Positions 1 through 53,373 of a stretch of DNA of 64,000 bases are shown in pieces. The first letter of the stretch is position 1. Every line of letters begins with the position of its first letter. The notes beneath the pieces are model-generated. The model was not told the DNA's origin and searched no databases. It saw nothing but the letters and a program-made list of their open reading frames with translations. The position numbers were made by a program, and so were the translations under genes. Source of the DNA: Syncephalis fuscata S228 (lineage: Eukaryota; Fungi; Zoopagomycota); the NCBI GenBank assembly GCA_025786725.1, contig JAHLTZ010000033.1:186001-250000 (forward strand), written 5' to 3'.

Positions 1-844
1 CAAGTACAGCTATTTTATGATACAAAATTTTTAATAACATATAAAGAACACCGTCATTATTTTAAATTTATAAACTAAAGCCGTATTTGGTTAAGAAATA
101 TTGCTAAGAAGATTGGTAGAATACCGCGTCAACCGCTACTAGTCATAGGCCAGATAAAAGTACTGCTGAGTTAGATTGTTTAAGTAGTGGAGGAGAATAA
201 AGAAAAGGAAAGAAAGATGCAATGTAGATTATATGCTGTGCAGTTGATAAAGTATTCTTTATAATACGGAACCAAAAGGGATAATGTAATAGGAATAACA
301 GATTAATATGGTTTGAATGTAAAATGACTAACATCTAATAACACTTAATCTATTGAACATGATGATGAATGGTGGATGGTGAATGACATTAGAGTTTAAA
401 ATACTCATCATTGTAGATTCTTTATCCAGTATGCATATATCCTCTAGCCATTCATACTATTTTATTGTTTACCCACACAAGCTGAAATTTATTAATAACA
501 AGATTTAGTAGCAAACGAGCAATGTTTTTGGATAAAAAAGACAAAGTAAGTATAAGATATAGTGAGTATACAACATGGATAGCACGGATAGCAGAGTTGA
601 AGTTATAATACATATGGCACAATGAATAAAATGAGTGAAACATATAAAAGCATGGAAATAAAACGTAGTTGCTATGCCATAGAATGATATATGTAGATGG
701 AGAATATATGCGTACTGGATAATAGATTAAGGACGATTAGTCATATCTACGCAGGGGATCATCCCTCCATTGAGTAAAACAAATTGCAATAAGCAATAAG
801 TGGTGACGTAGGACTACGCCTCGCAACCATAATTGTATTAAGCC

Positions 845-3551: not shown

Positions 3552-5070
3552 TTATAAAGCACCAAAGCTGATGGCTTTACTACGTGTACTGCAATTAATT
3601 ACAATTCCAGTCATTAGGAAATATGGCACGCAGCATTTGTCAGATTCATCCAATTCACGTATAGCTTTGCCGTTACTCATATCTACCAATAAATACTGCA
3701 TATCAGTGTCTTGCTGTTTAAAGATAGCGAAAAGATCACCAATAATATGAAAATATCCGATTACGTCGGACCAGTCAAATCGATTATTGAAAACGAGTTC
3801 TTCATCTTGCTCCTCTAGTAATTGATGGTAAATCATCCACGTATCATCATGATCATTTCTAATGCTAATGACTTTTTGCGATATTTTCTGAACGCCATCT
3901 AACACAATATCCATATGGCAATCGAATGTAACTGTATGGCACAAAAACAAGGGGGTAGATCCAGATCGTATGAACATTACTATGCGAGAGAATTCATTAG
4001 ATGGAACAGAAGTATCATCTAGGTGTATACCTATCCAGTAATGCTTTTGTTGAGACTTTTCAATTAACGCATCTTCAATAAACTGATACAATACCCACTC
4101 AGTACAGTCATTCTTATTATCAGTAAGTTTGGCAGTGTAGACGGCAACGTGATTAGATTTAGCGTCATAAATACATGTAGTATGTGTTGTTATACTATCG
4201 AGATCTTGGGTATGTTATTTGCCTGTTTTCAAATTCCATGCAATTCGTTTAGTCATTTGATCATAGTTTCTATTACCGTGTAAGTATACCATCCAGTTAC
4301 CGCTGATTCCTATAGATTTGACATTAGAAGGCATGTGTGTAGTATCTTTTCGTTTAACATTGTTACGAGGATGAATATTCCCAAGCATATGCTTTCTACT
4401 ATAGAACATTGCGGTAGAGAACTACTTATTTAACATTAATTGATGTATACAACTGGAATAGAAATGGTCAATAGTTTTTGTCTTTAAAGTTGATTTCGAT
4501 TCTAATCTGTTTGTTCTTCAATTTAACCTTTGCTTGATAGAAATGCCTTTAATTCAATCATAACAACTTTCTGATATTTATTAAAAGTAGTAGTATGTTG
4601 CAGAGTGTAATAAATAGTTAAAAACAAAGCTGCACCAATTGGTTGGCAAATAGTTTTTTTTTAGCATCGCTTGATTTTTTAAGCCATGTAATTATTGCTT
4701 GTTTTAACGACCATACTGCCAGTTGTTCGGTGGTAACACGTTGTCGGTATAAATCATGCCAGTCAAGTTTGTTTAGCAGTGCAACTGATTCCATCGGTAT
4801 ATCTTCAATCAGAAATGACTTCGTGCACATTAATGTACAAAATCCCATTCTTTTACTTTTTGAGGACCATTAAGGAATTGGCGATGATGAAAATGTTACC
4901 ATAATATTACTGTTTTAAGCTTTGAATTCAAAGAGCGACAGCAACATTGAGCTCACTAATCGTGCCATTAAGATACGACATAAATCAAATAGGGTCTTTA
5001 ACTGGAAGACAGTTAGCAGATACAAGTAATTTACTAACTGGTATTTGCTCAGTAGTAGATAATTTCATTG
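3552..5070 (-). pseudogene. Degraded, mosaic member of the intronless F-box-like family
   Basis: The 3' part is near-identical to the genes at 20912-22429 and 38188-39702. Upstream fragments (LDWHDLYRQRVTTE, WMVYL) are broken by several frameshifts and stops. Confidence 0.8.
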
Positions 5071-6068: not shown

Positions 6069-7993
6069 ATGGCGCGGGCGTCATTCTTTCTTTGTCTTTT
6101 AGCACTTGTCTATTTGGTTACAATACAAACATGCCAGGCAATGCTGTCTTATAAAATTAACGGCGAGCAAAAGCACTCTCGTACATATGAGCCATTTTAT
6201 GGCCGACCAATTCCTTACAAAATCGACGGCGTTTTGGTATTTGCGGAGTTTTCCAAAGAGACGCCCTGTACATTAATCGCCTCCAACGTCTCGCTTGCCA
6301 TAAGAAATAAATATAATTTGAAAAATAATTATCAACATGCCATTGTGGCGACCGAAGAAATAAGCGAAAAACATTTACAATGCAAGTCTTTCGATGAAGT
6401 AAGTACTGAGCCATGAAGCAGATCTTAAATTTACCATGACTGTTTTTCTAGCTTAATTATGCGTCCATTCAATTTGGACGTCAGCTAGATGAGTTAGGAT
6501 TTCCACACATGGCCGTATTCTTATACTTTCTGGCCCAGAGCGATACTTATCCAACAGTTGATTTTACTTCAAAAATTGGATTGACTGCCTTGGTGTTGAA
6601 AAGGGACTACGAGAAACATGTACCCATATTAAAGAAAAGAACTGAGCCGTTATTGATAACGATAGAACAAGGTAATTTATTTAATTACAAATGTATAACT
6701 TTGAGTAACACGATTTAAACCAGGCTCCACACCAACTAATGAATTCTTCTCATCCAATGAAATGAACGCCTATCGATGGTTTTTTGTAGCAATACTAACA
6801 GCGCTTTTGCTAGAGAGGTTTATCTACATGGCTTATTTGATCAGGTGCAAAAAGTTTTATTTTGGGATGCGCAATCTAATTTACTCAATAAGCTTATTAT
6901 CACTTTTATGTAAATACCAATTATATACATATAAATAGTTACTGATTTAATTTTTGATTCAGTGATAGTAGTTAGTCGGGCTATTCACCGATCGCCATTC
7001 ATCACCAGCTGCATAAGTAGAATAGCCTATTGTATTTTCTCGTTGGATTTCTTTTTATTGTTATTTGTATGGTAAGTCTATTCTATTGCCAATGTATACA
7101 ATCTAACAGCAATGAAAGGTCGGCGCTTTTAGCATCAGTCCAGGCCATAAACAGACTGTTGTTATTCAAAATGCTTGTCACCATTGGATGCGTGCTTACT
7201 CTAGGCATAATGATCCTGGATTTTGGATATTGGTTTACTCATCACACAGTAATGCGATTCTGGGCTAGTCAGTCATACTTTTATGTAACTTCTATTTTTC
7301 ATTCTATTCTGGCAATTATCTTTGCATATTGTGGTATGTAAGAATATTTCAAGTGTTTTTATTAGTGATTTATAACATAAACTAACCATTTATACAGGCA
7401 TTCAGTTTCTACTCCAACAGCGCCAGTGTGTCATAAATTCATCCACTCGTCAAGCTCTAAAAGTGGTAAGTATATTGGCAGCTTTCAATTTATTTACTTG
7501 TCTCTAACATTTAACCATTTAGTTATGCCAAACCTCTTTAATTTTCTTTGTTAGCTTTATATTGCGCAGTATTGGTACAATTTTAAATATGCGAACGCCT
7601 ATCTTGCCATCTAGAGCACAAATGATTAGTATGCGTTTGATGCTGGATTGTGGTGATTTCATCGGTCAGTTTGCAGTTTTGTGGGTGCTCGGCCCTCAAA
7701 TAGCCCATAGCGAAAACTGGTCACAAACAAGATCGAATCTTTCGTCAATACTTAACCAGTGGCTAAAGCTTATTAGAAAGCCTTCTAACGCTCGAAACAA
7801 TTCGGAAATTTCATTAGGCCAAAACTACCACAATGCACGTATTTCAGCACTGGCAGCAACACGAAACGGCACACCTGTAATGTCGTCCCATTTGTCCGTA
7901 TCTGCATTGGAATGCGAAGAAGCAACATTAGAAACAGCAGCAACCGCACTTACACCGGCAAAAAGTCACTTTAGTATTAAAGGTCGCATTTGA
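6069..7993 (+). CDS. Orphan multi-pass membrane protein: signal peptide, extracellular PA-like domain, about 6-7 TM helices, cytoplasmic tail
   Basis: Hydrophobic N-terminus MARASFFLCLLALVYLV; multiple GT-AG introns; serial hydrophobic exons; paralogous to 10216-12155 (YKIDGVLVF vs YRIHGVLVF, CKSFDE vs CQSFGE, WVLGP vs WLLGP). Confidence 0.7.
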
Positions 7994-8160
7994 CAGCTAT
8001 AGAATTACTACTATTATTATTGAATAACAGCATGGTTATTGTGTCATTATTGTATTATTTTGAAATAAACAAATCTTTAAACCATATATTTAATAGAAAT
8101 AATCGTATAGCGGAAATGATAAGAAACAGTAATGAATAGCAACTGCAGCCATTGTCTTTG

Positions 8161-9831
8161 CTAAACGTGGCATATTTCGTCAAAGCTAGACTTTCCAATT
8201 CGCTTTTCTATTGTTTTGTGGAATTTTTTCCACGGGCAAAGATCCGTATCCTTTGGGCAGCCAGGAATGCGAATTGGTACCTCGTTGTGCAAAACACGAA
8301 CATAGTGGTTCTTAGCTGAACCTTTTACATTGTTATCATCACATGACAATAATTCAAAATGTAAATTGGCTGCAAACGGAACAATATGCGATGTGCGGAA
8401 GACGCGTTGATCGTTGAATTTGGGTTCCTCGGTGTATATCCCTATATTAACAATAAATGATAAATACGTCATTAAATTATATTCTTAAACTTGTGACGTT
8501 TGAATTACCAATTGCGTGAGAATTAAAAGAATGGTGCCTGTGTGACCGAAGCGTAAATGCGAACGAGCTTTATCTCGGCCTTTCATTGCTGTTTTCATCT
8601 CTACTAGTACATGTGTAAGGAATGAGCCTGCAATCTTGCTGTTTATCGAACGACCATTTCCATATTTGAAATAACGGTAAAGATCCTCACGAAAATCCAT
8701 TAAAGTTAGTGGATTAACCTCTTCGAAAGTTTCATCTTCAATATCACTGGTGGCCGTATCATTTGCGGCATTGGATACGGCCGACAGACTGCTATCGATA
8801 CTATCAAACTTGTGTAATAGCTTGCACCAATGAGCATGTTGTGCGTAAATGGCATTTTCATACGTGCATATGGTGACTGCAGTTCGATAGAAATCTTCAT
8901 TTACTTTAAATTTCAATTGTTTTGACAATCGATCCAAAACCTTGTTTAAATAGCGTTTTTCATATGGCTTATATATCTTTTTCTGCGGTTCTTTGTCTTC
9001 AGCAATTTTTTTCCATCGTGGACAAGCTTCAGAAATTGACTCGTCTCGTGACTTGTGCTATAGTAATTAATGAAAACCATTTATTAATATTTACACATAT
9101 TGTTTAAAATGAAATTGTACTCACGTTTGGTAATATGTGTAGTGATTTGCCTTGTAGCCTGTGTCCCGAATAAACACCGGCATATGATTGTGCCGACTCT
9201 ATAACTCTGTTCAGCAATATTAGTCAAATGCCATAAATTGCTGTATTTCCACTTACTGAGCGACTGCATAGGTAGAGTAGATGGCATGTTTGTGACGTTC
9301 TTCGGCAGTTTTACCTAGCCATTCTTGATAGCGCTGTACATCGCGCTTTGCTAGCGATGCCAGATCATATACACCTTGTTTGGCCAGCTGTCCCGCCTTC
9401 GATAAGCTATATGGATTTTGCCAATCTTTCATCCACTTTGGCCAGCTCTTATGCTCATGCGTCCGCAACTCCTTTTCTAGTTTGCTGAATTCACGGATTT
9501 CACGGCGATGTGGCTGTCGTGTACCATGGCGGGCAACAACATGCAAGTGTACAAGGCTACACTGTGCAGGCACACGACTGGTTTTGTTGTTGGCAATTTC
9601 AGTATTGTAGCGTGCATATGTTGCCATAAGCATGTTTATCGTCTGAAAGGATGGCGGTGGTGTAGCACTTGACAACAGGAGTATGTCATCATTGCCATTG
9701 CGAATACTGTTACTGGCCCTGAATGGCAATATAGGGTGGTTAGGCTGATGAATGAACACCAGCAAGCTTGCGGTAAGTAGCACCGCTGTCACTAACAGTA
9801 GAGACTGTATATTAGGATAGAAGCGAATCAT
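8161..9831 (-). CDS. Histidine acid phosphatase, MINPP1/phytase type, N-terminal signal or anchor
   Basis: RHGTRQP active-site motif, GQLAKQG, RFGHTGT, IVPFAANLHFELLSC, YVRVLHNE, IPGC; spliced. Confidence 0.88.
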
Positions 9832-12544: not shown

Positions 12545-12635
12545 GCAGAGTTCCATTGTAGCCAAGTGACCATCATAAGGCCACTTAAACCACATCTATG
12601 CGACTAGCAGATACAGCAACGTCGTTGCGGTTACT
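12545..12635 (-). ncRNA. Candidate Fanzor omegaRNA scaffold
   Basis: Downstream of the Fanzor fragment on the same strand. Hairpin GCAAC-GAC-GUUGC (12628-12616) plus a 15-bp stem UGUGGUU(U)AAGUGGCC / GGUCACUUGGCUACA (12594-12557) with four G.U pairs that only form on the minus strand. Confidence 0.45.
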
Positions 12636-12760
12636 TGAAAGTACAAAATGTAAAATAAAATAAAAAAGTATTAATTATAAATCAGTAACGGTCATTAGAA
12701 GTAATCATAATAATTACCTTATTATTTGGAGTCGATAAACTCCAAGAAATATTAGCTTTT

Positions 12761-13189
12761 TTAAAACCAACCCGGTATAATACCACTCAATCGTAGACTA
12801 CCAAGAATATGTTTGAAATTTGAAGCATCAGCCAAGTCACGATTCCACAATCTTGCACCCGTAAAAGTTTTATGAGCTTTCTTACAATTTTGATTTGCGC
12901 ACCTACAAACAATCTAGATGTTAGAATAAAATATTCCTTTTGCACTCAGTCTATAAATTATAGTATCTTAGAAGCCCGTGGCACTTTACTTTTGGATGAT
13001 TGCGACGCTAATACGAACGTGGATTGTCAATTATTTGGAATGTTTTTAAACTTAGAGCTTGACAAGTAGGACAGGTTTAGAGCTGTTATACTCATCAGTT
13101 AAAAGCACATTAAAGTCATTCTTTTAAAGTATACGCTTCAAACCAGCACTTCGAATGGGGTTTTGAAACTTTACATGACCGGCATAATG
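12761..13189 (-). mobile_element. Decayed Fanzor (eukaryotic TnpB homolog) C-terminal fragment: RuvC-II, zinc finger, RuvC-III
   Basis: Manual translation: HYAGHVKFQNPIRSAGLKRIL*KNDFNVLLTDEYNSSK/TCPTCQALSLKTFQIIDNPRSY*RRNHPKVKCHGLLR|CANQNCKKAHKTFTGARLWNRDLADASNFKHILGSLRLSGIIPGWF*. It shows DE-x-x-S-S-x-x-CPxC, HGLLRC-x4-C and WNRD-x-A-x-x-x-N. It carries two internal stops, one frameshift and a 64-nt intron relic at 12903-12966. Confidence 0.85.
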
Positions 13190-13340
13190 CTAAATGACAT
13201 ATATGTTATATTATTAATACATTATATTAAAAAAACTAGTTAAATAAAATACAAAATGTATATGGTTCACTTGCTAATTTATTATAATATTGCCAATAAA
13301 ATAACAGAATAACATTAAACATGGTTTATACCTAAATTGC

Positions 13341-15182
13341 TTAGCTTTTAACTATTCCTTGATACGGAACATAAACAGCTCGGCTCGGTGTTGATCTATT
13401 GACTTCTGGATTAGGATCAATTACAATATACCCAGAATATGACCATATTTCATTTTTTAATATATTTGTCGGAGGACTAATTGCTACAATAATCTCGCTT
13501 ATCTGATTTGGAAGTAGACTAATTGATTTTGGAAAGGAAACAGCTGCAATCACAGGTGGCCTCAATGACATATCGATAAAATACGATACTTTTGAAACCG
13601 CAGCAGTTGGAATATGTGAAAGTTTATACGATAATAATGTGGATGATAGAGATGAAATTTTGATTGGTATATTCACTGTGTTGGCATATGTATATCCCAT
13701 ATTAATTGACGACGGGGCAACAAAAATATTTGCAACATCTATCAATTTGTCAAGATTAATCATGCCGGCACCTTGATATGATACAGGAGCGTAGTAGTTT
13801 GGATTGCTGTCTTTGATTGGAACTGCGCTGTTTTGCAATAGAGTCTTGACATATACAACGTCAAGCGAACTCTTGGGATTGACTTCAGTCATTAATGCAA
13901 CTGCGCCAGCAACATAGGCAACAGCTGCTGATATATCGCTGAAATGAGGTTCATTCATTTTGGTTGTAATGGTGGTAGTATAAATTTTATAACTTGGTGC
14001 CAAGATGTCAGGATATAAAGGTGGTATGAATAGTTGATTTTGTGGTCCAGCTGAGTCAATAGTAACGTTTCCATCTTCAATGTATCCATATTTTTCTGCA
14101 AAAATATATTTGTGTCCACGCTTATTCTTATAACCTTCTTCTATAAATAAAGCATCTTTTTCACTAATATTGAATAAAGGTATGTTGCATTCATTTCTCT
14201 CTCTAGAAACGTCGTTTACAATGATAAGCGCAGCCATTCCTGTGACTCTAGCAAGCTCTATCAAAGCCTGCATTTCTATTTTTTTATACCAGACAAGTGC
14301 AATACCTCTTTCTTCAAACCCATTAGAGTATTCATTAGAGGGGTCTATAGGATTATTAGGGATAATATCCACTTCTTTGCCAAAGTTATATTTCATGTTT
14401 AAACACGAAGACGTAAACTCAATACGGCGCCCTGTTGTTCTTTCTTCAAACCAATGCGATAAATGATATTCTTGTTTGGCGCCGCCAACGCTTAATACAT
14501 ATAGTCTCTTGTACGAAAAGTATTGCCGATTTATAAAATTGTTGACCGTTGCTGCAACAATCATAATTACACCTTGGTTTGCAGCATCTTCTATTGTTAG
14601 TCTCAATTGAGCGCTACTTTCATCTACAATGGCAATTTCTGGTAATACGATAATTTTCATTTGATCATTAATCGCTGCTGTTATAGCTTTTAATACCAAT
14701 GAAGTTGAAGTTGGGCCTCTGCAGCCAAATACACGATAGGTGCCAAGTGTCGCCTCGGGTGCAACTCCGGTAAAATAATCGGTTTTTGCAACGGCAATTC
14801 CAGCTAGACTTACGCCACGCTTATTGCATTCAGATGTATCTTTACCTTGGCCATACTTAGCAGCTACAAATATGCGATGATATTCATGCTTTCCTTTAAA
14901 TGCAGTAGCTTTGAGATTAATTCCACTATCAATAATTCCAAGTTTTACACCTTTCCCTTTAAAATTCATTTTGTGAAGTGCCTCAACACCGGTAGGCACA
15001 TAATAGGGTGTTGCATAAATTGGTTTGCTGGTGATTTTAGAAGTAATAAAAGGATTACTTGGGTTAGGTTTTGCGTAAAAATCGTTTTCATGTATTTTGG
15101 CACTGTCTACGGTAGAATATTGTGTTGAACAAAACAGCAGTAGTGTAAGAATTGCCGATTGTTGTGCTTGTCTTGATATCAT
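13341..15182 (-). CDS. Secreted subtilisin-like (S8) protein with PA and Fn3-like domains, probably catalytically inactive; intronless
   Basis: Signal peptide; GKGVKLGIIDSG; FTGVAPEATLGTYRVFGC; PDILAP; YQGAG; YSGYI...VPYQG. The HGT motif reads RGV and GTSMA reads DISAA. Confidence 0.85.
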   Translation of the reverse strand: MISRQAQQSAILTLLLFCSTQYSTVDSAKIHENDFYAKPNPSNPFITSKITSKPIYATPYYVPTGVEALHKMNFKGKGVKLGIIDSGINLKATAFKGKHEYHRIFVAAKYGQGKDTSECNKRGVSLAGIAVAKTDYFTGVAPEATLGTYRVFGCRGPTSTSLVLKAITAAINDQMKIIVLPEIAIVDESSAQLRLTIEDAANQGVIMIVAATVNNFINRQYFSYKRLYVLSVGGAKQEYHLSHWFEERTTGRRIEFTSSCLNMKYNFGKEVDIIPNNPIDPSNEYSNGFEERGIALVWYKKIEMQALIELARVTGMAALIIVNDVSRERNECNIPLFNISEKDALFIEEGYKNKRGHKYIFAEKYGYIEDGNVTIDSAGPQNQLFIPPLYPDILAPSYKIYTTTITTKMNEPHFSDISAAVAYVAGAVALMTEVNPKSSLDVVYVKTLLQNSAVPIKDSNPNYYAPVSYQGAGMINLDKLIDVANIFVAPSSINMGYTYANTVNIPIKISSLSSTLLSYKLSHIPTAAVSKVSYFIDMSLRPPVIAAVSFPKSISLLPNQISEIIVAISPPTNILKNEIWSYSGYIVIDPNPEVNRSTPSRAVYVPYQGIVKS

Positions 15183-16932
15183 CACTGTAATTAATTGTCG
15201 TATTGAAAAATGATTGTATAATTTAATTGTATGAAAAAGTGCCGATAAAAGCAAATAAAAATGAGACGCTGTATGTGAGATGAAAATATTTGGAATAAGT
15301 ACTTGACAGTTATTTTTAAACATAGACAAATTCCATAAAAGAATGCTAGCATGCACTAAATGTCATTTAAATTGTCAAACAGTACACTCAAAACGTGCTT
15401 TTAAAATAGCACTAGCCATAAAATGATAGTTGCATAGAAGTCACTAGTAATTCGATTTTCAATTGGTTAAGTTTTTAGTTTTAGCAGCCATCATGTGGTA
15501 CTATTTCTTCTTTAGTTATTACTTCCATTTTCATATAATTCTTTTGGCGGAACTGGTTACTCGTGGTATTTTATATAAATATTTATTTCCAATAGTTATG
15601 ACCAGCTTAAAGAGTGATTCTAGTGTAATTAAATAGTAAATTTTAATGAAATGTGCATTAAAAACAATAGTAATTATTTAATTAATAAAGCGTTGATAAT
15701 ATTACGTATATCGTTACGTATAATCAATCAAACTGTATGCTATTTCGCACAAGTATGCATACAACGTATAGGTAGCCGTTGGTAAAGTATACTGCAATTG
15801 TATTGCGTAATAGTATCATGGTTGCGATAATACACTAATAAATGTACAAAAATGGCTGTTTTTTACAGATCATGACTTACATAACTAAAATACAGCAAAA
15901 TGGTTGCTGAATTCGAATTCGCCATGCTTAGTTATACATATTGGTATGAAATATAAAACAATTATTTTTACAAAAAAGTTAGTCAAAAATGCAGTTTACG
16001 TAAATATTTGTTACCAAATATCTAAAATACATGTATGTCAATAGCATAAATTGCTACAATACATTAATATTTCTGTATACTAGCTTACTATTATGCTTGC
16101 TATAGTATTGTAGAGCACTCTGGATTTATTTTAATTTTAATTTAATTTTTAATATTAGATTTTAAAATCATAAAGTTTAATCTTTTTTATTAACAAATAT
16201 TTTGCCGTAATCACGTTTATTAGAAATAAAACATTACATTGCTGTAATGATCATACACATCAGAATAACAAATAACGCCAATTTATAAAGTTATAATACT
16301 GTTTATTGATGTTAAGGCACTTATACGATTACCCTGATTATAAATAAGTGAGTGAGTATTTAAATAAAGTTATAGTTAATGGTGAGTAAGACATGTAGAT
16401 AACCAAGAGGATTGTATAGCTAATAGTGTTTGTTATACATAAATGATAATGTTATTACAGTCCTGACTTTAAATGTTGTAAGCTAGATAATTGAGCAGAT
16501 TTGTTCAATTGAATAATATATATTTAGTCACGCTGTCGCCTTTTTGACCATTAGCCAATATATCAGTGTAACAGCTTTGACCTAAAAAATGATGCACCAG
16601 CCTTGTAAAACACTTAATCAGAATAAATAAACAAAATTACGTATACAATATACAACGATTTACAACTATATAGTTATTACTTTATGAATTAACAATATAA
16701 AAGTACGCTACACTTTATTATAATGCAATGCAATAACACAAGACCAGTTAGCAGGATCGACATAAGGTACATGTGTCATTAGGCATCCAAGGCAGCAATA
16801 AAGCATCAGTGAAAACTAAATCACACAAGCATTCGCGCATAGCTGTATTTACGCACAAAAGAATATATTAAAGTGGATTTGGTAGTTGATAGTAGAACTA
16901 TTATGGTCGAGTTCAGTGATAGCATGGATTTC

Positions 16933-51038: not shown

Positions 51039-53373
51039 ATGGACTATTATCGGATTGTACTCGAACTGCATAGCGATACACTGGCCCGATTACAGTCTAG
51101 TCACACACCAGCCGACACACCGATTCAACTGTTTGATAGTAACTGGCCCGACGATACCGATAATCTGCCAGTAGATTCAACAGTGTTAAGTTCTAGTAAA
51201 GTAGCAGATTCGCAACTCCATACGATCGACGTGAGATACGGGCCTATATTTGTAGATTGGTTTGATTTTTCTATGCAGTCGGCGGAACAGCAAAAGGATA
51301 CGGAGGGTTCAAGTACTTGTGAAATTACTGACTCGACCACAACCGTGCCGTTTATTTTAGGCTGTACACGCTTGGAACAAGGTGTTATACACTTGTATCG
51401 CGGTCTATCATCTAATAGGGAACGTGTAGAAGATGGTCAACATGAATCAAGTACAGCTGGTGGTGGCGGTAGTGGTAGTAATACACCATTAAATGGAAGT
51501 GTTGATGATACATTAGTCAGTCTATTAGCCGTACCAACTCATATGACACCGGCAGATTTATTGGCATTTCTTGGCAGTGCTATTGAGGATATAGCACATA
51601 TACGTTTACTTAGGTAGGTGGATATAGGCACAATAGATAGATACTAATGTTGCTATTATCGATTAGAGATGTATTTCCTCACCGCTATATTGCTTTATTA
51701 AAGTTTAAACAGGCATCTATGGCGACTGAATTTATTGCAGAATATCATGGTCGTCCATTTAGTGCGTTGGAAGTAAGTGGCATTATTAATAGCTTTTACT
51801 GAATTGTTAATACTAAATTCAAACTTAATCATATAGCCCGAGATATGTCAAGCAATAAGAGTAGCATCGGTACAACTGGTTGCTGCAGTTGATCCAAGTC
51901 AGATAGATAGACCTTCATGTATATCACTTCAGCTTGATATGAATGTTACAGGAAGTGACAGCCATGACGAGGTAAGTATTTGTAATATCTATTATTCTAG
52001 CTGTAAACATTACTATTTAGATAACGCTACGAGAGTTGCCTACTTGTCCAGTATGTTTGGAAAGAATGGACTCGCGTATTACTGGTCTGGTTACAATTGT
52101 TTGTCAGCATACATTCCACTGTCAATGTTTGAGTCAATGGGGAGATTCTCGGTAATGAAATGCTTACTATAATACATGTATTCTAAACCATAAGCTATAT
52201 CATTAGATGTCCAGTGTGTCGATATAGTCATTTAACATTTAAAGGCCAGTCAGAAGGAGAAGATAGTGGATCAGCAAACGACACACATTCTACGACGAGT
52301 CAATGTGCAGCTTGTGGTAATCGATCCAACCTTTGGATATGTCTAGTTTGTGGACACATTGGATGTGGTCGGTATGTTACTAGTATAAGATGTGACATAG
52401 AACACTGCTAACTATGGTTATTAGATATGCACAAGGACATGCTAGAGAACATTATGAACAGACGATACATTGTTATGCGCTTGAGCTAGAGACACAAAGA
52501 GTATGGGATTATGCCGGTGATGGGCAAGTATAACAAGTTGTATTGAAGCTTAAAGGCTAATCAAATACATTTTATCCTAACTATTAGGTATGTACATCGT
52601 TTAATTCAGAATAAGCTGGATGGAAAGTTGGTAGAATTGCCCGATGATACAGGCGATACTATATTTGATAGTAGAAATCCCATGAATAATCGTTGGACAT
52701 CTACATCTACCTTGCCTCAAGTAAGTAGATTGATTAGCTATTTAGCTACAATATATGCTATGCCATTATACTAATTGTCTGTAATCATAGTCAAAAATGG
52801 ATATTATGGCATCCGAATATACTCATCTACTTACGGCTCAATTGGACTCGCAAAGACAGCATTATGAGGTGGAATTGAATGCAGCCTACGAGAAGATTGT
52901 TCATTTACAAGGAGAATTGGAAAAGATAAGCCCCAAGGCAGCAATGACCGATTCTATGTATAAAGATATCCAACGACTCGAGTCGGAACTGACAACGACG
53001 CAAAAAGAAAAGCTGGCTACCGATAGAAAGTCTGAAAAGCTTGAAAAGCGTTTAAATACACTGGAACGGCTATGGGAAGAAGAGCGACAAGTAAGTTTAA
53101 CGAAATAGCGTTAGCTTTATTTATTTATTTTGCTAGATGAACGATGGCATACGAGCGAATCAAGAGGCAGCGCAAAAAGCTACAGAAGAACGTGATAAGG
53201 AAATAACTGATTTACGTGATCAAGTACGCGATTTAATGTTTTTTATGACGGCTCGTGATAAAATCGAACAGGGCGAGCTGGGCGAGGAGTTAAAAGAAGG
53301 ATCTGTACAAGCAATAGCACCATCAACAGCATCAAGCCAGCGCAGTAGTAAAGGAAGGCGTCGTCGTAAATAA
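51039..53373 (+). CDS. ETP1: BRAP2/ETP1-type RING finger and ZnF-UBP ubiquitin ligase, multi-exon
   Basis: [29 protein letters not shown]...[74 protein letters not shown]. One GC-AG intron at 52524-52587. Confidence 0.93.

Follow-up and report, generated by a model that had tools for sequence, protein, structure and literature searches.

On its sequence, the minus strand of positions 13179-12550 in a 64,000-nucleotide stretch of the Syncephalis fuscata genome (the window, meaning the whole stretch analysed) very probably represents the 3′ third of a Fanzor1 element: a dead, 5′-truncated pseudogene, one of about 25 copies of a family dispersed through the genome of this species (estimated probability about 0.93). 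Syncephalis fuscata, a member of the Zoopagomycota and a parasite of Mucorales, is thereby added to the fungi that carry Fanzor1. The window copy is best regarded as an ordinary transposon fossil, neither a working nuclease nor a new kind of one, and it has no biotechnological value. What is unusual about it is only the linkage of its family to subtilase genes, with inverted arms that can be nearly identical.

Fanzor1 has been known from Mucorales, chytrids and other early-diverging fungi since the work of Bao and Jurka (2013; PMC3627910). Two such proteins, PpFz1 of Parasitella parasitica and SpuFz1 of Spizellomyces punctatus, have been characterised in structure and biochemistry (PMC11423790); PpFz1 is active as a nuclease, its omega-RNA is defined and its TAM is ATN (PDB 9CF0-9CF3; Xu et al., 2024; PMC11423790). 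Fanzor and Syncephalis are linked in no paper within the searchable literature, and the genus is not listed in the accessible part of the supplements of PMC10711439.

The relic and its parts

The DNA of the window is AT-rich and eukaryotic. A sequence-only reading had reported fragments of a Fanzor C-terminus on the minus strand of an apparent intergenic gap, and three-frame translation of 12700-13260 recovered its peptide strings exactly, on the minus strand at 13179-12761. Four pieces can be read there: KNDFNVLLTDEYNSSK (13123-13076), TCPTCQALSLKTFQIIDNPRSY (13076-13011), RRNHPKVKCHGLLR (13007-12966, after a TAG stop) and CANQNCKKAHKTFTGARLWNRDLADASNFKHILGSLRLSGIIPGWF (12901-12764, followed by a TAA stop at 12763-12761), all on the minus strand. 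They belong to two exons. The remnant of the second-to-last Fanzor1 exon (12967-13179, minus strand) is homologous to about 20 sister copies and has a sharp start at 13179; it comprises the segment that follows GDWSA, RuvC-II (LLTDEYNSSK), the first zinc knuckle CPTC (13073-13062, minus strand) and the stretch NPRSY..KVKCHGLLR. The last exon (12764-12902, minus strand) is an open frame that holds the second zinc knuckle, C-x4-C (12901-12884), and RLWNRDLADASNF with RuvC-III.

Both catalytic codons that had been described as retained are in place. GAG at 13091-13093 (minus strand) specifies the RuvC-II Glu and aligns, by way of a sister exon, with the E of LIDEF in PpFz1, while GAC at 12836-12838 (minus strand) specifies the RuvC-III Asp of WNRD, as read from the codon itself and from the alignment of copies. 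Among the aligned sister copies, WNRD is otherwise kept only in the C201 copy (L044); the remaining aligned copies have WNCD, WNCG, WHCN, WHCD, WHGN or RHCN at this site. The C-terminal motif of Fanzor1 is present as DEYNSSK(T)CPTC ... C-x4-C ... x13 ... RD, in segments separated by the frameshift, the stop and the intron, and it fits the Fanzor1 definition [TS][TS]-x-x-[C4 zinc finger]-x(5,50)-RD (Bao and Jurka, 2013; PMC3627910).

The intron is a 64-nt phase-2 spliceosomal intron in the zinc-finger region (12903-12966, minus strand), delimited by the alignment of sister copies, and it accounts for the gap between HGLLR and CANQNC. Of the 19 aligned sister rows, which stand for 18 true family copies, 13 have its signature, AG/GTAC...CTAAC...TAG/G. 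The window copy keeps the CTAAC branch point and the TAG acceptor, and its donor has changed from GT to AT (G>A at 12966). In PpFz1, CHGLLRCKN is uninterrupted, and the matches of the two flanking exons abut (residues 1162-1209 and 1205-1245); the 64 nt that separate them in S. fuscata are therefore an intron, as the sequence-only reading had proposed.

Family homology in the window copy ends at 13179. Most sister copies have homology upstream of the equivalent position, the longer ones as far as RuvC-I and the start Met, and the RuvC-I Asp together with the N-terminal REC/WED half is found in four of them (L041, L043, L044 and L051). Set against the longest copies, the window copy is of a truncation class without REC/WED and RuvC-I, so the absence of these regions noted earlier is real. 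This 5′ truncation class, with the same junction to the 3′ flank of a subtilase gene, is common to the window, C112:864k and apparently C246:113k. Compared with sister copies, 1 bp has been lost from the A-run at 13078-13076, which places a frameshift between SSK and TCPTC, and a premature TAG stop occupies 13008-13010 (minus strand), where several sister copies have CAG (Gln). Between the 5′ cut, the 1-bp deletion, the TAG and the altered donor, no intact reading frame is left in the window copy. What the window holds is a fragment of a Fanzor1 member and not a whole member, and it does nothing as a nuclease.

Evidence for Fanzor1 ancestry

All protein searches were run exon by exon on uninterrupted stretches. 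The last exon of the window copy (50 aa), searched alone against the whole PDB, has as its best match the Fanzor1 of P. parasitica (9CF0; E 0.0013); the match, RLWNRD.A..NF..IL..LR, lies at residues 1205-1245 of the MBP-PpFz1 fusion construct. SpuFz1 is the second PDB match of this exon, and a profile built from 11 natural last-exon translations found PpFz1 only (E 0.0018). An uninterrupted second-to-last exon from a sister copy (L043:8255-8410) matches PpFz1 at residues 1162-1209 with E 1.1e-6. For a 175-aa open stretch of another sister (L041, on C190), the only PDB matches at E up to 10 are PpFz1 (5.6e-14) and SpuFz1 (9.9e-10); its alignment with PpFz1 covers the RuvC-I DxxRxD block (LLLDTERKDLMYC against VLMDPGRRDLLYC) and the GDWSA motif, and the stretch is 100% identical to KAI9593358.1, a predicted protein of S. 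fuscata. The four short window pieces returned nothing relevant from Pfam, and those of 23 aa and 22 aa had no Fanzor match in the PDB. On unjoined sister exons, PF07282 (Cas12f1-like TNB / OrfB_Zn_ribbon) scored 13.6 and 17.8 bits, below its gathering score of 26.3, probably because the intron splits the domain. With the last exon, the sister exon and the L041 stretch all matching PpFz1, the Fanzor1 identity of the relic is supported, and the ancestry first suggested from motifs appears to be correct.

Two other families were considered and rejected. Fanzor2 or an IS607-type TnpB does not agree with L041, whose PDB matches are two Fanzor1 proteins. A prokaryotic TnpB (IS605/IS607) is at odds with the spliceosomal intron, with neighbours that are fungal genes and with the genome-wide absence of PF01385 (OrfB_IS605), which has zero matches in S. 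fuscata. The TnpB proteins of IS200/IS605 do have the same RuvC triad and a zinc ribbon (TNB), and PF07282 is weak on the sister exons; they differ from the S. fuscata family in the points just given and in that its nearest relatives are fungal.

The closer comparison is with PpFz1, which has RuvC-II, the zinc knuckle, HGLLRC and RuvC-III in the same order as the S. fuscata family. Residues common to PpFz1 and the sister second-to-last exon read L.DE...S..CP.C...LE.FK.I.NPRP......PKV.CHGL.R. Identity between the two is moderate, and the FRI insertion of PpFz1 (about 100-110 aa) is missing in the S. fuscata family, where the alignment jumps from residue 985 to 1096 (PMC11423790). PpFz1 is active, whereas the S. 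fuscata copies are all pseudogenes. SpuFz1 (PDB 8GKH), also active and intact, has the same C-terminal motifs, with its match to L041 running from RuvC-I to the GDWS region, but it is more distant from the S. fuscata family than PpFz1 is.

A dispersed family in decay

From 13179 to about 12600 the relic is repetitive DNA, with at least 23 copies that are 76-86% identical in a family of about 25; the last exon of the window copy has 33 matches in the S. fuscata genome. These counts of copies are lower bounds, and C13/C109 and C317:375k/C66 may be assembly duplicates. The 3′ end is common to the copies, which can be sorted into discrete classes by their 5′ truncation; the longest copies (C201, C223 and C68) have an N-terminal MLRV...GWRPEYL and from there span about 1.8-2 kb up to the common end. 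Stops are present in every copy of the subfamily that was examined, and no intact copy was found among the roughly 25 in S. fuscata. The prediction that the genome hosts a Fanzor family is thus supported (in the genome as a whole there are 87 PF07282 matches, about 26 of them above the cut-off), but the suggestion that intact copies elsewhere could be new programmable nucleases is not supported for this subfamily.

The similar divergence of exons, intron and codon positions indicates that the copies have drifted neutrally since they arose: mean pairwise identity among copies stands at 84.4% for exon 1, 88.3% for the intron and 82.6% for exon 2, and divergence at the codon positions is 0.126, 0.091 and 0.111 in the family alignment. 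Changes among the copies comprise 957 transitions versus 426 transversions, with a GC>AT bias. A process like RIP was considered and rejected, since the CpG effect is only modest (22% vs 13%) and fits ordinary AT-biased decay.

Beyond the stop codon the element has a non-coding 3′ tail (12550-12760, minus strand), which the sister copies share as far as about 12600, five of them reaching about 12550. Its mean identity of 68.5% is below that of the exons and the lowest of all parts. The omega-RNA of a Fanzor normally lies in the region after the 3′ end of the ORF. A consensus RNA fold of this tail yielded no supported structure (-5.95 kcal/mol, with a covariation term of +0.94).

The history best in keeping with these observations begins with an ancestral gene of about 1.8 kb with at least one intron, encoding a canonical Fanzor1 protein that lacked the FRI insertion. 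That protein had REC/WED, RuvC-I (..LLLDTERKD..), RuvC-II (DEYNSSK), a C4 zinc finger split by the 64-nt intron, and RuvC-III (WNRD). An ancestral Fanzor1 element may then have landed beside a subtilase gene, and its tail, already truncated, could have been copied passively with that gene as the subtilase family expanded, with gene conversion between copies afterwards. The window copy kept only the part from just after GDWSA to the stop codon, plus the non-coding tail, and the truncated copy was then hit by the 1-bp deletion, the change of CAG to TAG and the change of the donor from GT to AT.

Linkage to subtilase genes

Directly upstream of the relic, on the same strand, is an open 671-aa ORF of the subtilase family (Peptidase_S8; 13341-15356, minus strand; PF00082, E 3e-19), and the relic starts 160 bp past its stop. 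This family comprises at least 28 copies that are 73-78% identical, most of them physically linked to a Fanzor1 tail, and its members combine Peptidase_S8 with an Fn3-like C-terminus (examples are C112:757055-759277 and C13:332885-335144). Of about 24 Fanzor tails, at least 18 have a subtilase copy no more than 1.5 kb away; about 12 subtilase copies are without a tail, and five or six tails are solo. A linkage of Fanzor1 with the subtilase family was not found in the available portion of Bao and Jurka (2013; PMC3627910).

The linked tails occur in three layouts: on the strand of the gene and downstream of it, which is the layout in the window; inverted and upstream of it; or on both sides as outward-pointing inverted repeats, as at C13, C109 and C112. 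At C13 (L045), arms of about 700 bp at 3894-4596 and 7437-8139 enclose one subtilase gene and are 99.9% identical; at C112 (L046), arms of about 700 bp at 4098-4765 and 8494-9158, again around a single subtilase gene, are 98.2% identical. Such near-identity within a locus suggests arm-to-arm gene conversion or a recent local duplication. Between loci the tails are 84.4% alike and the adjacent subtilase coding sequence 75.2%, a relation that holds in 34 of 36 pairs and that simple co-duplication with neutral decay does not predict; in one locus pair the subtilase parts are 99.5% identical and the tails 88.8%. Comparison of these sequences points to mosaic histories and to gene conversion.

Just upstream of the subtilase gene, the window has a dispersed repeat of about 500 bp (15578-16201) in which there is no long open frame. 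Its copies elsewhere form adjacent inverted pairs (C350, C317, C132 and C68), in C350 once more beside subtilase copies.

Alternative explanations

Three readings compete with that of a dead, passively copied Fanzor1 remnant. The relic could be a chance resemblance of motifs in AT-rich intergenic DNA with no Fanzor ancestry at all, and the short window pieces, taken alone, do lack Pfam and PDB matches; but the best PDB match of the last exon aligns at the C-terminus of PpFz1, in the RuvC-III region, the DNA is 80-86% identical to copies whose upstream parts match Fanzor1 at 5.6e-14, and the intron falls precisely at the junction of the two exon matches in PpFz1, all of which leaves chance with next to no probability. 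A genuine relic might instead have been retained for another role, as the 3′ UTR or the terminator for the subtilase gene, as a residual omega-RNA-like transcript, or as a recombination substrate that keeps the subtilases mosaic. Its position shortly beyond the subtilase stop on the same strand would suit such a role, as would tails that are better conserved than the subtilase coding sequence between loci and inverted tails that are 98-99.9% identical within a locus. Against this, the intron is conserved as well as the exons and the post-stop tail is conserved least, the 3′ tail gave no covarying RNA structure, and many subtilase copies do without a tail while some tails stand alone. Gene conversion between inverted repeats also gives high identity within a locus without any function, and a retained role is very unlikely.

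The subtilase gene and its Fanzor tails might also form one mobile composite, either a Fanzor transposon with a captured subtilase or the product of one-ended, 3′-anchored copying of the kind known for the Helitron2-borne CRe-1..3 Fanzor1 (PMC3627910), and this would be compatible with the relic itself being dead. The frequency of the linkage accords with it, as do the outward inverted tails on both sides of the gene at three loci and a subterminal hairpin-like palindrome near the common 3′ end. The common 3′ end and discrete 5′ classes are also reminiscent of the 3′ overabundance in CRe-1..3: fungal Fanzor1 families of this type, in Mucorales and elsewhere, are multi-copy and often non-autonomous, with intact 3′ ends and 5′ truncation that varies, likewise here (PMC3627910). 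Unlike those families, however, the S. fuscata family showed no Helitron, Mariner or MuDR ends and no TSDs. No terminal inverted repeats were found around the window unit, no TSDs at the two-arm loci (where the outer ends of the arms are unequal), and no transposase beside the solo copies, which lie between ordinary host genes; mobility of a composite unit is therefore a minority reading. The copies are moreover only 73-86% alike, so nothing has moved recently, and the shared junction classes fit plain segmental duplication. A mobile composite is accordingly improbable, if less far-fetched than a retained role. It is similarly doubtful that tails and subtilase make up a composite unit (a captured-gene transposon or a conversion-homogenised palindrome) that drives copy-number expansion and mosaic diversification of secreted subtilases in this mycoparasite and that, separately, another Fanzor lineage may be intact and active. 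If the linkage did go beyond hitch-hiking, it would be a case of a transposon remnant shaping the protease repertoire of a parasite.

Other Fanzor lineages and relatives

An exhaustive, profile-free search returned 357 relatives, of which 76 have E values no higher than 1e-10. Those that are named are hypothetical proteins of early-diverging fungi, from Halteromyces, Helicostylum and Bifiguratus (Mucoromycota) and from Syncephalis plumigaleata and many Coemansia (Zoopagomycota). The Fanzor1 model of S. plumigaleata (KAI8056096.1; P0013, 631 aa) ends at the zinc-finger intron, without the RuvC-III last exon, and it is because the model ends there that the last exon of the window copy has no match in it. 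This truncation implies that Fanzor genes in these genomes may be systematically mis-annotated as truncated hypothetical proteins, gene models either missing them or cutting them at the zinc-finger intron.

Within the window, a PF07282 match at 52235-52360 (E 0.06) was rejected as Fanzor; the weak match comes from a host gene, BRAP2-like by eye, that has a zf-UBP-like zinc finger here (52214-52411, plus strand).

Among the top PF07282 loci of the S. fuscata genome, no stop-to-stop open stretch exceeds 282 aa. A second Fanzor1 subfamily is present as two near-identical copies, at 3541-5430 of L061 (C316) and in L062 (C24). It is better preserved, with long open N-terminal and RuvC-I exons; its GDWSA motif has decayed to NNCSA, and no RuvC-III end is recognisable in it. 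Some other loci retain an open C-terminal part with no long frame upstream of it. An example among the 87 PF07282 matches, from a different Fanzor lineage, is a 131-aa open frame at 1432-1824 of L023 (C339; minus strand). Its C-terminus looks intact (DIDEYNTSKVCSKC ... CQNNDC ... WQRDVNASRNM), with the E, the CxxC...CxxxxC zinc finger and WQRD all kept.
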